Part shown: piece after piece, positions 1-6,529 of the stretch
Numbering within the stretch: the stretch's first letter is position 1
How the letters are laid out: each line of letters opens with the position of its first letter
NCBI GenBank assembly: GCA_000388065.2
Contig: KB932212.1
From: Fonticula alba ATCC 38817
Taxonomy: Eukaryota > Protista > Nucleariida
Length of the DNA stretch: 7,169 nt
Direction: 5' to 3' (one strand)
Program-made: the position numbers and the translations under genes
The notes under the pieces: generated by a model
What the model saw: the letters and a program-made list of their open reading frames with translations, nothing else
Databases searched by the model: none
Told to the model about the DNA's origin: nothing

Positions 1-936
1 CCCCCCCCCACCGCGAGGCGGGATTCCGGCGAAGAGCCCGATCCGCGCACAACCCACGCCTTTTCGCCGGTATCGCCGGCGCCCTCCCTGGAAAGGCGGC
101 CCCTCGCCGCCGACCCGGCAAGGAGCTGGGCATTGTCCGTTGCCCGTCCCCTCTGCCGGGCCGCCTCCCCCTGCCCCCTCCCCCACGGGGAGAAAGGGGC
201 CAGAAGGCCGGGATCTCGAGTGACGAGATATTGCCCTACAGGGAGAGAGGGCGCGGGCGAATGGGCGCGGGGGGCGGCGGCAGGGGGGAAAGGGACCAAG
301 ATTACTTCCCCCCCCCCCTCCCCCCTGGGCGCCCCTTCTTCTCGCAAGCTTTCAAGGGGGAAGGGCGAACGTGTATTTGCCTCCCCTTCTTCTGGGGGAG
401 GCGTCGCATCGGTGGCCGATGCAGGAGCCCACTCAGCAGCGGGCATGTGTGGCTCTCCCTCCTGCTGTGGCTGCCTCCTTCTCGGCCTCCGCCGCCGGCG
501 AAACGGGCCAGCGGCGGCGGCGGCGGCGAGGGGGCCGGGCGGCACAGCAGGATGGGAGATTGCTCGGAGGGGGCTTTTTTCTTTTACTCAAGGACAGGGA
601 GGGGGGCTGCGCGCGCTTGGACACGGCCGCCTGACGAGCGGCGGCCCGACACACCCAGGGGGGGGGACTACATCGGGCACGGGCGGCCGCCAGCAAGTCA
701 GGCGCGCAGCGCAGCCTACCGGGCGCGTGGCGGTGGCGGTAGCACCATAGCCACACCGGAGGGCAGGCGGGGGGAGGCGAGGCCAGGGGACAGGGGCCGA
801 AGGGGCAGCAGCCAAAGGACGGGGGGTGCGCGCGCGCGCGAGCAAGGGCAGGAGGGGGGGGGCGCGCGCGCGCGGAAGGGCGGCGGGCTGCACACGGAAA
901 GGACCGGGTCTCCGAGGGGGTGGGGGGGGGGGACGA

Positions 937-3056
937 TCAGTCATCGCGCGAGAGCACCCGCGGCACCCGGCCCAGGCTGGACTTGGCCAGGGACTGGTCG
1001 ACCAGCATGGACAGGATGGAGGACTCGCGGTCGCGCTTGGCGCGCAGGTACTTGCGGCCCTCGGCGGCCGAGGCCCCGCGCAGGGCGATCACCGCATTGT
1101 TCTGGCCCAGGGACACGATTTGGGAGATGGGCCGGTCCGGGGAGGCGGCGGCGCCGCGCTCGCCCAGCCGCACCGGCGGCTTGTGCTTCTCCAGGCGGCA
1201 GATATTCCGCGCGATGGTGACCCCATGCGAGGCGGCCGTCAGGGCCAGCTTCTCGCAGGTGAGGTTGCACGCGTCGCCGCCGCTGAAGATCTGCTGGTGG
1301 CCCTCCACCTGCAGGGTGGCCTGCACCCGGATGAAGCCCGCATCGTCCAGGATCTCCGGCATGGACCGGCGGAGGAACTGCGTCTGCGGCACCATGCCCA
1401 CGGCCACGATGTACTTGTCGCAGGGCAGCAGCAGGCCGTCGGCCGTCTGGAGAACCGTCCCATCGACATCGACCCCGACCACGCGCTGGCCCAGCAGCAC
1501 GCTGACCCCGAGGCGCTCGAGGTTGCGCGAGGCGATCTGGTGCGCCTTGCGCGGCAGGCGCTTCAGCAGGCAGTGGCTCGAGGAGACCAGCGTGATGCGC
1601 TTGTCCGGGAAGCGCTCGGCAAAGTCGCAGGCCAGCTGCACGCCGACCGCCCCGCCGCCGATGATCACCAGCGACCCGGCCTCGGTGATGTCCCGGCCCT
1701 CGCTGGCCAGCTTCTTCAGCCGGAAGGCGATGGTGCTGTTGTCGCTCTTGATCGGGGTGTTGTGCAGGGACCCGCACCCGAGGATCAGGTAGTCATACGG
1801 CACGTCGGCATTGTTGACGCGCACCGCGCCGCGCTGCACCTCGCAGCAGTACCCCTGCACCACCCGGCCCCGGTGGATGTACCGCGAGTGGGGGAAGCGG
1901 AAGCGCTCGGCCGTGGCCGGGTCGCCCCAGGCCTGCGCGATGCCGGGCGTGAACTCGAAGTAGTTCTTGTTGTCGATCAGCGTCACGTGGAAGCGCGGCA
2001 TCTGGTCCAGCACCATGGCCGCATAGGCGCCCACCATGCCGCCCCCGACGACGACCACCCGGCGCACGCCCTCCGGCAGGGTGCTGTGCAGGTGTTGGCA
2101 GGGGGGGGGGGGCGGAGGGGGCGGAGGGGCACCGATGCCGAAGTGGGCGGCGACAGGCGAGCCGGGAGCGCGTGTGCGCGCGCATCGGTCAAAAAAGGCC
2201 GGCCGGTGTGGAGGGGGGCATTTTTTTTTTCGCACACAGGTTAGAGGCAACATCGAAAAGGGACACGGGTCGGGCGGTGTGTCGTGGCTCCCCCGGCCCC
2301 GGGCGCGCGCACGGTGGTGGACGTACGGCGAAATGTGGTACGGCGAGTCGAGGTACATCTTCAAGAAGCGCGGGTAGATGGACACCTCGATCAGGCGGAG
2401 GACCTCATCGAGGGCGGCGTCGAAGACGCGCAGCTCCTCCTCACGGTCGGACGAGTCTTCCCGCGGGTGGTGCCCGGCGCCGGCCAGCTGCAGGTCCGTG
2501 CTGGTGGTCAGGCTGCCGGCCGAGGCCGACCCGGGCCCCGGGCCGTCCAGCAGCAGGTCCTGCCCGCCGATCAGGCTGGTCAGGGACTGCGTCCACCGGT
2601 CGGTGATGCCGTCGGCCGCGGCGGCGGCGGCGGCGGCGGCGACGGCGGCGGCCCTATCCAGCGCGCCGCCCGGCGGGGGGGTCGGGCTGCCGCCGGGCGA
2701 TCGACTGGTCGACGAGAGGGACGCCGTGTCGTACAGGTGCCCGGAGCAGCTGGACACCGGGTAGCAGTCGCCCGGCAGGGAGGTGGGCGAGGCCGGCGCC
2801 CCGGGCGACCAGCCGCCCTCTGGCGTGAAGTACTCCCCGGCCGAGCCGCCGAACCAGGCCCCGGTGCGAGAGTGGCAGCTGCCGGGCCCGGCCGCCGGGC
2901 AGGCGTTCATGGGCGCCAGCCCGGGGCTCGGGCGTGCCGGCAGCGTCAGCAACCCGGGGCAGGAGTGCGACTGCTCGATCGGCTGGCCATGCTGGTGGTG
3001 GTGGTGGTGGTGGTAGTGGCCCTGCTGCGGGTGGTGGGGGGAGGCGCTGCTGCTGC

Positions 3057-3087
<31 letters not shown>

Positions 3088-4143
3088 GAGGTCGGCCACC
3101 GACGCGGAGTACCCCACCGGCAGGGGGGACAGCCGGTGCGGAGCGGCCCCGGGCACGGGCGACGGCCCATTGGCGGCGTCGAACCACTGGGTGCCGGAGC
3201 CGGTCCAGCCATCCGGCACAAAGGCCCCGGCGCTCTCGGCCGCCGACAGGGCCATGTCCGCGTGGCTGAGGGCCGCCAGGTCTTCGCACTCGGTGGACCG
3301 CGACGAGGACACCGACGTCGACCGGGGCCGGTTGCCGCCCAGGAAGAAGTTCTTGATGCTGGAGGCACGCGCGCTGGTCGGGGTGGCCGGCCGGCCGGTG
3401 CTGGCCGACCCGGCCGAGGACACCGACGCCAGGGAGCTCATGGATGTGGCCGGGCCCAGGGGCGACCCGGGGGCGGCGGTGGGGCCCGGGTCCGCGGCCG
3501 GTGGCTCGGCGCTGGACCCGCCACGGAAGAGACGCCCGGGCGAGAGCTTGGACAGGCGCCCGGCCGGCGAGGCCAGGCGCTCGACCGGGCCACTCGTCGG
3601 GGCGTCCTCGGCGGCCCCGGCCCCGGCCCCGGCCCCCGGGCAGCCACTTGCGGAGCAGGCGGAGCCCGACCCGGGCCCGGAGTCGGACCCGGTGGCCGGC
3701 AGGGCCAGCGACGAGTGCGATGACCCGGCCGACTCGGAGGGGTGGCTGGCGGCCGAGAGGCGCGACCCGCGGGCCCCGGCCTGGATGAGGTACTTCTGGC
3801 TGGCGGCCAGGGTTTGGATGCGGGTCTTGTGCGGCAGATTGAGGGACATCGGCGAGTCGGGCAGGATGTAATCGTGCACGATGCCGGAGATGGAGGCGCT
3901 ATTGCGATTTTGCTTGAAGTTGAGGACCGTCTCCACGAAGATGATGTTCTCCTCGGCGAACTCCTGCCCGGCGAAGGCGCACAGGGCACTGCGCAGGTCG
4001 GTGTTCATGATGACATCCACCAGGGAGAAGGTGTTGTTGGTGGAGTCGTCGATGATCTTGGACCGGTCGGTGCGGCCGTGGAAAATCGGGTCATGCCGGC
4101 GGAGCTTGTCGTGCAGCTTCACCATGCGGATGCCGTGTGCCGT
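937..4143 (-). CDS. Spliced gene for an RGS domain + AIFM2/FSP1-like FAD-dependent NAD(P)H oxidoreductase fusion protein. Exons 4143 (or ATG 4125)-2327 and 2083-937; possibly 5'-incomplete.
   Basis: Frame open from 4323 to TGA at 937-939. Recognisable RGS motifs (FAEENIIF, YILPDSPMSLNL, FDAALDEV..IYPRFL) and two Rossmann GxGxxG motifs plus a GD motif. Codons are overwhelmingly G/C-ending. GT-AG intron at 2326-2084 preserves frame (...YHISP|TLPEGVRRVVVVGGG). Confidence 0.92.
940..2064 (-). other. AIFM2/FSP1/AMID-like pyridine nucleotide-disulfide oxidoreductase domain (Pyr_redox_2, NDH-2 superfamily)
   Basis: FAD-binding RRVVVVGGGMVG (GGGMVG at 2029-2046), VTLIDNKNYFEF, YDYLILGCGS, NAD(P)H-binding LVIIGGGAVGVQLA, FIRVQATLQVEGHQQIFSGGDAC, KLALTAASHG and IVSLG..A. 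All are collinear with human FSP1 as I recall it. Confidence 0.9.
2084..2326 (-). other. GT-AG spliceosomal intron, 243 nt, phase 2
   Basis: Donor CC|GTACGT at 2326 and acceptor CACAG| at 2084 after a C-rich tract. CTAAC branch-like motif at 2240-2244. Contains A/T homopolymers and non-coding composition. Donor and acceptor phases match. Confidence 0.85.
2353..2433 (-). other. RGS domain, C-terminal part (approx. helices 7-9)
   Basis: LRVFDAALDEVLRLIEVSIYPRFLKMY matches the RGS C-terminal consensus FDxAQxxIxxLMExDSYPRFLxS. Confidence 0.85.
2618..2641 (-). repeat. Coding (GCG)8 tract, poly-Ala
   Basis: Direct reading; encodes part of AAAVAAAAAAAA. Confidence 0.9.
2989..3087 (-). repeat. Coding trinucleotide repeat cluster: (GGC)9 Gly9, (AGC)5 Ser5, (CAC)6 His6
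   Basis: Plus strand has (gcc)9 at 3061-3087, (gct)5 at 3046-3060 and (gtg)6 at 2995-3012. Confidence 0.9.
3784..4029 (-). other. RGS domain, N-terminal part (approx. helices 1-6)
   Basis: FSLVDVIMNTDLRSALCAFAGQEFAEENIIFVETVLNFK...IVHDYILPDSPMSLNLPHKTR matches the RGS consensus (F..EFSEENxxFW; IY..YI...AP.EVNI...R) by eye. Confidence 0.85.
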
Positions 4144-4466
4144 CTGGTATGTCGGGAGTGAGTAGTCCGATGAGGAGCGCCGGCGAAGGGAGGGCGCCGC
4201 CCGTGGCAGTGCCGGGCCGGCGTTCGGGGGCGTGCCGCTGACCCGGGAGGGGCTATCTCCCCCGGACCCCAGGGGGAGATCGGTGCGCGAGGGGGCTGTG
4301 CGAGGGTGCGCGTGCCGACCGGGTCAGCAGGGGGATGGCCCAGGAGCGAGGGGGCGGCGGTGTGGGAGGGGGCGTACCGCTGCGGAGCATCTGGGACCGA
4401 GGAGGTGCGCGCTAGGCGTGGTGGGCGGGGCGAGGCGGGATGTCGGCGTGGGTGTCGATGATGGAC
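4144..4466 (-). other. 3' part of a probable upstream intron (donor not visible, probably in the gap)
   Basis: Pyrimidine tract, TACTCAC branch-like motif (4158-4164) and ACCAG| acceptor at 4144 in phase 0 with the CDS. In-frame TGA at 4324-4326 shows this stretch is not coding. C-rich on the sense strand, like the other intron. Confidence 0.65.
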
Positions 4467-5401: not shown

Positions 5402-5776
5402 GGGGGGGGGGGCACAAGCGTGGGCACGGCCTGACTAGCCTCAGGGAATGGGGGGGAGTGGGGGCGGTGGCGTGCGCGCCGCCCGGCGCCCAGGCTGCAT
5501 GTGCCCGGCTGGGTGCCCGGACACCGGCCGAGGGTCCGGGGTGTGTGTGCGACTTCCCGTGCACCAATAAGTGCCGCGTCGGCGGCCCGCACCGCATGCA
5601 CCTTTCCCGGAAGGGTGGCCGAAAAACCAAGGAAACGCCCTCCGGCGCGGCTGACTTTCGCCGGGATCCCGCAGTGCGCAGATGTGTATGCGCGCGCGCA
5701 TTCGCGCCGGGCGCGGGTTTACCGGGCGCGTCGCGCCCCACGCGCGCACGCCGCGGAGGGCCCCGCCCCACCGGGG

Positions 5777-5797
5777 CTCTCTCTCTCTTTCTCTCTC
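5777..5797 (+). repeat. 21-nt pure pyrimidine (CT)n / GAGA tract
   Basis: ctctctctctctttctctctc-type run read directly. Confidence 0.8.
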
Positions 5798-6105: not shown

Positions 6106-6529
6106 TCGGCTCCGACCGGGCGGGGATGGTCTCGGCGCATCGCCGGCCTGCATGGCGGCGTTTCACCGCGCACGCGCCAGCCCGCACAGTCGGCGGTCTG
6201 TGCGCGCGCGCGCGCGCGAACGCGCCGGCTCCGGCGCCTCCTGTGATGGGCCGACTTCCCGGCGGCCCCCGCGCCTGGTGTGGCTTTCACGGGCACGATT
6301 ACAAGGNNNNNNNNNNNNNNNNNNNNNNNNNNNNNNNNNTCGGCTCCGACCGGGCGGGGATGGTCTCGGCGCATCGCCGGCCTGCATGGCGGCGTTTCAC
6401 CGCGCACGCGCCAGCCCGCACAGTCGGCGGTCTGTGCGCGCGCGCGCGCGCGAACGCGCCGGCTCCGGCGCCTCCTGTGATGGGCCGACTTCCCGGCGGC
6501 CCCCGCGCCTGGTGTGGCTTTCACGGGCA
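6106..6529 (+). repeat. 190-nt exact direct repeat (6106-6295 = 6340-6529) flanking the 33-N gap; probably unmerged overlapping contig ends
   Basis: The copies look identical, including the (CG)8 length. The second copy starts exactly at the first base after the gap. Confidence 0.9.
6307..6339. other. Assembly gap, 33 N
   Basis: Run of N. Confidence 1.

Follow-up and report, generated by a model that had tools for sequence, protein, structure and literature searches.

In the nucleariid amoeba Fonticula alba ATCC 38817, which belongs to the sister lineage of Fungi, a single expressed gene carries an RGS domain and a flavoenzyme with FSP1/AIFM2 as its best match on one spliced transcript. The gene, H696_05598, lies on the minus strand of a 7,169-nt stretch of contig KB932212.1 (assembly GCA_000388065.2), hereafter the window. 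A protein search showed that the product read from the window is 100% identical to the annotated H696_05598 (1042 aa), which databases name only as 'hypothetical protein / RGS domain-containing protein'. An earlier note, made from the letters of the window, had proposed this gene as a candidate redox-coupled regulator of G proteins, and we followed up that proposal computationally.

A single spliced transcript encodes both domains

The window is eukaryotic DNA of 72% G+C, with assembly N gaps nearby, and its minus strand contains a frame without stops from 4125 to 937 (1062 codons). The coding sequence of H696_05598 is join(4390..4378, 4295..2327, 2083..937) on this strand, comprising 1042 codons plus the stop. 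The first coding exon (4378..4390) has only 13 nt; it starts with the ATG at 4390 and encodes residues 1-4 (MLRS) and the first base of codon 5. An in-frame TAG stands upstream of the ATG, and the 5' untranslated region (4391..4466) extends to the assembly gap, with RNA contigs reaching 4466. Coding exon 2 (2327..4295), identical to residues 5-661 of the annotated protein, holds a disordered N-terminus, the N-terminal half of the RGS domain, a disordered insert, the C-terminal half of the RGS domain and the start of the linker. Coding exon 3 (937..2083), identical to residues 661-1042, holds the end of the linker and the FSP1-like oxidoreductase with its C-terminal domain, and finishes with the stop codon at 937-939. 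A probable 3' untranslated region (357..936) is contiguous with the coding sequence and is covered by RNA contigs 357-501, 541-883 and 854 onward.

Transcript evidence came from Logan contigs of four RNA runs, from two samples, mapped on the window. Intron 1 (4296..4377, 82 nt, GT..AG) was spliced in three of them (X1-X3), with the joint at 4295/4378, and intron 2 (2084..2326, 243 nt, GT..AG on the minus strand) was skipped in all four, with a contig depth of 0 inside it. A single RNA contig of about 1.5 kb consists of 854-2083 joined to 2327-2603, and so connects the whole oxidoreductase domain to the last RGS helices. Three further stretches, 2657-2982, 3098-3601 and 3645-4295, are represented by contigs in the low-complexity middle of the gene, with no splice joints in this part and with interruptions only at three simple repeats, at which the assembly ends. 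The simplest reading is a continuous transcript, tiled by these contigs across the insert. These results confirm that H696_05598 is one expressed gene with the RGS domain and the flavoenzyme on one spliced transcript, as the earlier note had proposed from the letters, and they agree with its splice between 2327 and 2083 and its linker of about 15 residues, LDSPYHISPTLPEGV, between the domains after splicing. Its upper limit for the gene, 4143, has to be corrected to 4390, since 61 N-terminal residues had been missed.

Intron 2 preserves the reading frame and contains no stop codon, which is why a single open reading frame runs through the whole stretch. If retained, this intron would lengthen the linker by 81 residues and leave the fusion intact; no retained form was present among the contigs. 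At position 4210 (plus strand), the genome has T and RNA contigs from sample S1 have G; the change is synonymous (coding GCA to GCC, Ala33) and reflects either a difference between strains or an error in the consensus.

The RGS and oxidoreductase domains of H696_05598

The N-terminal half of the RGS domain (residues ~91-183, helices 1-6; 3760..4038) matched Pfam RGS (PF00615) with 31.8 bits, above the cut-off of 23.9. The match is limited to profile positions 4-81 of 117 because an insert of about 440 residues, predicted to be disordered, follows helix 6. This insert (residues ~184-620; 2449..3759) occupies the α6-α7 loop, is transcribed without splice joints and was not present in the paralogues and orthologues that we aligned. 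Beyond it, helices 7-9 (residues ~621-656; 2341..2448), ending in IYPRFLKMYLDS, align to the C-terminal half of the RGS domain of the family. Alignments were redone with trimmed relatives, since long low-complexity tails misplace the RGS N-terminal half in MAFFT. With the F. alba paralogue P0003 as query, RGS16, RGS8 and RGS2 were the best PDB sequence matches over the whole domain (E 8.7e-7).

We modelled residues 88-662, that is, both RGS halves and the insert without the flavodomain, using AlphaFold2 (AF2) with the family alignment as input. The predicted local distance difference test score (pLDDT) was 83-95 in the N-terminal half, 75-95 in the C-terminal half and below 50 in the insert, and the two halves pack together in the model. 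All of the top 50 Foldseek matches of this model were RGS domains, but with weak E values (~1e-2), and their root-mean-square deviation (rmsd) was high where alignments crossed the insert. After trimming of the low-pLDDT stretches, VIA-align superposed the model on RGS8 with Z 12.1 and an rmsd of 2.0 Å over 108 of 116 residues, using both halves (model range 8..568). The R4-class proteins crystallised with Gα (RGS8, 16, 4, 1 and 2) topped the list, and the identity of the domain was 25–28% to R4-class GTPase-activating proteins (GAPs) versus 14–17% to SNX proteins. The two halves are thus predicted to fold together into a canonical nine-helix RGS domain.

We take E87, N88, N128, D163 and R167 of RGS4 to be its contacts with the Gα switch regions, as in the complex with Gi-α-1 (1AGR). 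Four of them have identical equivalents in H696_05598: E120 and N121 (codons at 3946-3951), N157 (3838-3840) and R647, the first three placed by alignment to RGS16 via the paralogue. Across the family, the positions of E87, N88 and N128 are occupied by Glu in 72, Asn in 65 and Asn in 61 of 77 members, respectively. Four further members, P0161 from Blastocladiella emersonii together with P0157, P0215 and P0250, likewise carry a long insert that divides the RGS domain in this loop between helices 6 and 7, suggesting that this loop is a tolerated insertion site and that the split arose repeatedly.

The second domain matched Pfam Pyr_redox_2 with 114 bits (core at 1234..2061). Its best solved relatives by sequence were the human FSP1 entries (phmmer E 1.4e-23, aligned almost end to end, over residues 4-337 of 381), with AIF1 far lower. 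A full-length AF2 model had pLDDT values of 84-94 over most of the oxidoreductase domain and retrieved only flavoenzymes in Foldseek, with human FSP1 (hFSP1) as the best fold match (E 3e-23, TM score 0.72), followed by bacterial NDH-2. Both GxGxxG motifs are kept, GGGMVG for FAD (2029-2046) and GGGAVG for NAD(P)H (1642-1659), as are the equivalents of hFSP1 K118, D285 and K293, with K773 and K939 as the conserved lysines. By sequence and predicted fold, the C-terminal domain is therefore best matched by the FSP1/AIFM2 type.

Alignment to 8jsc/8wik places Gln810 (CAG, 1636..1638), after the second GxGxxG, where FSP1 (hFSP1 E156) and NDH-2 have their catalytic Glu. The E156A mutant of human FSP1 is inactive, and this Glu matches the proton-transfer Glu172 of Staphylococcus aureus NDH-2 (PMC10516921). 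Glu occupies this position in 86 of 90 fused proteins and in 128 of 128 unfused relatives. Gln occurs only in H696_05598 (P0001), its sister paralogue (P0002) and a protein from Syncephalis (P0027); the canonical Glu is present in the paralogue H696_04656. Activity also requires K117, K292/M293/Y295 and R53 of cFSP1 (PMC10516921); the equivalent of hFSP1 Y296 is Leu in H696_05598 and Tyr in 69 of 90 members. The H174 position of FSP1 governs the preference for NADH or NADPH, and an acidic residue there in NDH-2 and Ndi1 goes with a preference for NADH (PMC10516921). Of 90 family members, 81 have Asp or Glu at this position; in the Fonticula copies the residue is Ser. Gln810 and the 440-residue disordered loop suggest that the H696_05598 oxidoreductase is probably slow or inactive, and the domain may serve as an NAD(P)H/FAD-binding regulatory module or redox sensor.

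The family shares a C-terminal region of about 90 residues with its own invariant motifs, ARNICRxEK and G[RK]xPxxL. None of the ~90 family members examined starts with Met-Gly, and H696_05598 begins with MLRSAP behind the upstream in-frame stop, indicating that the myristoyl anchor of FSP1 is absent family-wide. This agrees with the premise of the earlier note, namely a C-terminal FSP1-like domain without myristoylation. Its view of an RGS domain split yet complete is borne out by the Pfam match of the N-terminal half and by the fit of both halves to RGS8 in the predicted model, and FSP1/AIFM2 was indeed the top match of the second domain by sequence and fold. Its description of a complete two-Rossmann FAD oxidoreductase is correct for the folds and motifs, but 'complete' was an overstatement given the Gln at the E156 position.

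A family of RGS-oxidoreductase fusions and its possible function

We searched for relatives with word-indexed searches, HMMER over 1.84 billion representatives, a hidden Markov model (HMM) of the family RGS domain, Pfam scans and cluster look-ups, and found about 90 RGS-oxidoreductase fusion proteins with the same domain order. Among nucleariids, F. alba has three members and Nuclearia one. Among Mucoromycota, many Mucorales contain the fusion, often with two or more copies per species, as does Jimgerdemannia (Endogonales), and a cluster of 59 Mucoromycota members in the ESM Atlas is annotated with both Pfam domains. Further members came from Zoopagomycota (Syncephalis, Piptocephalis), Blastocladiomycota (Allomyces, Blastocladiella, Catenaria, Paraphysoderma, Sorochytrium) and Chytridiomycota (Cladochytrium), together with some metagenomic sequences. 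No fusion turned up in Dikarya, animals or plants, in searches that were not exhaustive for absence.

In quick maximum-likelihood trees of the oxidoreductase domain, the fused holomycotan proteins formed one clade (SH-aLRT 96-98), with nucleariids apart from fungi and the fungal phyla in roughly the order of the species tree. This pattern indicates that the domains were fused once, long ago, in the holomycotan stem or before it, and that the fusion was then inherited vertically. The F. alba genes, three in number, arose by duplication within their lineage, and H696_05598 has the longest branch. From the last conserved residue of the RGS helices to the first Rossmann glycine there are 22–27 residues in all 21 members aligned, whereas the termini and the RGS loop vary in length by hundreds of residues, suggesting that the RGS domain and the oxidoreductase are a geometrically constrained pair.

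The sister groups of the fused clade in the same tree are mostly long eukaryotic proteins. In one of these relatives, P0197, the oxidoreductase directly follows a RasGAP domain, and two from Archamoebae, P0234 (Pelomyxa schiedti) and P0264 (Mastigella eilhardi), have a Ser/Thr-Tyr protein kinase downstream of it, which suggests that members of this oxidoreductase clade have repeatedly been joined to signalling domains. In the word-indexed search, the nearest short relatives without a fusion are proteins of ~345 aa from metagenome-assembled genomes (MAGs) of DPANN archaea (P0110-P0147; metagenomes, Pacearchaeota, Nanoarchaeota). At 35–40% identity, they are closer to the fused domain than vertebrate FSP1 (~25%).

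One member of the family, P0265, comes from a MAG labelled Cercozoa sp. M6MM and hence, by this label, from outside Holomycota. It combines a full RGS domain (Pfam 38.8 bits) with Pyr_redox_2 and branches next to the holomycotan clade, just beyond it, for which an older origin of the fusion, gene transfer or wrong labelling of the bin could account. P0153 shows a fusion to an MTC6 TIM-barrel and may be a gene-model merge. The Pyxidicula protein P0244 was rejected as a member, having only a weak family-HMM RGS match, inside the oxidoreductase domain, and no Pfam RGS.

Full-text literature searches yielded no description of an RGS-oxidoreductase fusion. A survey of G-protein-coupled receptor (GPCR) systems treats lineage-specific RGS architectures in general terms only, and its text does not mention this one (PMC3971589). 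The fusion proteins are already catalogued in public databases with their domains, and it is their conserved union that is unstudied. The earlier remark that the architecture is not known from model organisms therefore stands for classical model organisms and the searchable literature, but the protein is not singular, being part of a catalogued and widespread holomycotan family.

The explanation that we favour overall, as the probable one, is that an R4-type RGS domain and an FSP1/NDH-2-type oxidoreductase form an old family in which docking to Gα places the flavoprotein at the membrane. We infer the coupling part as follows. The RGS domain would dock on a GTP-bound, lipid-anchored putative Gα at the membrane, speeding GTP hydrolysis and ending the Gα signal. 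The same docking would put the flavoprotein at the membrane, near quinone substrates, and the reduction of quinones or lipid radicals, or an output of reactive oxygen species (ROS), might thereby be coupled to receptor activity. A more specific version, which we put forward tentatively and with some doubt, is a membrane reductase addressed by Gα: active Gα would recruit the flavoenzyme or switch it on allosterically, the RGS domain would time the pulse, and the clade would supply a redox output or sensor module that is reused in GTPase and kinase signalling, because its relatives are fused to RasGAP and protein kinases.

Several observations weigh against the favoured explanation. No single RNA contig spans the whole RGS insert. 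The equivalent of RGS4 D163 is Ser643 in H696_05598, the last RGS helices are more divergent in Mucorales members, and the RGS-like domains of Axin and SNX25, which are not GAPs, also align, with Z about 11. In the oxidoreductase, Gln810 replaces the catalytic Glu, and the R54 equivalent is Gln, this position being Lys or Arg in 72 of 90 members. Finally, the dimerisation and quinone-pocket region at the FSP1 C-terminus is not alignable, with the phmmer alignment ending at residue 344, and the model of the C-terminal region is partly of low confidence (low pLDDT at residues 976-1002).

Some of these points would be accommodated if the RGS fold were a docking or scaffold domain without GAP activity, as in Axin, SNX13/14/25 and GRKs, placed on an FSP1-like enzyme and unrelated to heterotrimeric G proteins. 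We regard this as quite improbable. The RGS-homology domains of Axin, SNX25, SNX13 and GRK align to the model at Z 10–11.5, and GAP activity has been lost in some RGS domains, according to the GPCR-system survey (PMC3971589); however, the best matches by sequence and structure are R4-class GAPs, and conservation across the family of the E87, N88 and N128 equivalents makes a mere scaffold less likely. Alternatively, the flavoprotein could be a sensor that gates the GAP, with NAD(P)H binding or flavin reduction altering its conformation or oligomeric state and switching the access of the RGS domain to Gα via the short linker, so that metabolic redox state would tune G-protein signalling. As an account of the family this seems unlikely, since the Glu kept in all but four of the 90 members suggests real turnover in most of them, but such a direction of control is especially plausible for the Gln-type H696_05598, which, like its sister paralogue, nevertheless keeps the GxGxxG motifs and other cofactor residues. 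The fixed linker length also fits redox gating, and AIF is known to dimerise on NADH binding. Similarly, FSP1 has been reported as an NADH-linked functional homodimer via its C-terminal domain (PMC10516921). Redox gating and recruitment by Gα are not exclusive of each other. An artefact, in which two adjacent genes or a misassembly are read as one frame at a G+C content where stops are rare, has next to no probability. Chance open reading frames of 470–480 codons do occur in other frames of the window, and there are N gaps near the gene in the assembly, but the artefact is refuted by the spliced RNA contig that joins the domains, with the junction seen in four runs, and by the same architecture in some 90 proteins of many genera, including uninterrupted paralogues.

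If the favoured explanation, with docking to Gα placing the flavoprotein at the membrane, is true, it would constitute a direct enzymatic link from heterotrimeric G-protein signalling to flavin/quinone redox chemistry and, for the FSP1 field, a natural example of a membrane lipid anchor replaced by a signalling domain. The family is testable in Mucorales, which carry several copies and include agents of mucormycosis as well as the genetically tractable Mucor and Phycomyces. F. alba has a Glu-type paralogue next to Gln-type ones, which allows a natural comparison of a likely enzyme with a likely sensor.

Remainder of the window and comparison with known systems

Outside H696_05598, the window contains a perfect 190-nt direct repeat (6106-6295 and 6340-6529) around a short N run, which looks like a duplication from scaffold gap closure and not like biology. 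At 5695-5797, RNA contigs from three runs match the window over only ~100 nt and run on for 255 nt at both ends, in sequence absent from the window; this segment probably represents an exon from a neighbouring gene with its other exons in or beyond the N gaps.

Like vertebrate FSP1/AIFM2, the oxidoreductase domain has two Rossmann GxGxxG motifs and a similar size (~375 aa including the C-terminal domain). It differs from FSP1 in its low identity (~25%), in the RGS domain that stands where FSP1 has the Met-Gly myristoylation signal, in the C-terminal domain, unalignable and with motifs of its own, and, in H696_05598, in the change of E156 to Gln and the loss of R54. The fused family is probably not an orthologue of FSP1; its nearer relatives, according to searches and to trees that did not include bona fide animal FSP1, are other eukaryotic proteins fused to signalling domains and the ~345-aa proteins of DPANN archaeal MAGs. 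NDH-2 and yeast Ndi1 are the second-best structural class (E about 1e-20) and share with 81 of 90 fused members the acidic residue at the FSP1 H174 position, from which the Fonticula copies differ (Ser). Their similarity to the domain is below that of FSP1, and C-terminal membrane-anchor helices of the NDH-2 type were not detected.

With the R4-class proteins RGS4, RGS8, RGS16 and RGS2, H696_05598 shares the predicted nine-helix fold (Z 12, rmsd 2.0–2.8 Å over 108–120 residues) and conserves the FxEEN motif and the loop asparagine (xxNL/I) that contact the Gα switch regions. The differences lie in the α6-α7 insert of ~440 aa, the Ser at the D163 position and the C-terminal flavoenzyme; an amphipathic or palmitoylated N-terminal helix was not identified in H696_05598. 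Among other RGS architectures (7TM-RGS, RGS-RhoGEF, GRKs, SNX-RGS), the GPCR-system survey describes RGS domains often recombined with effector or targeting modules into lineage repertoires, and a redox flavoenzyme is not among the partners discussed there (PMC3971589). The RGS-oxidoreductase combination is also distinguished by its range, spanning several fungal phyla and nucleariids rather than one species.

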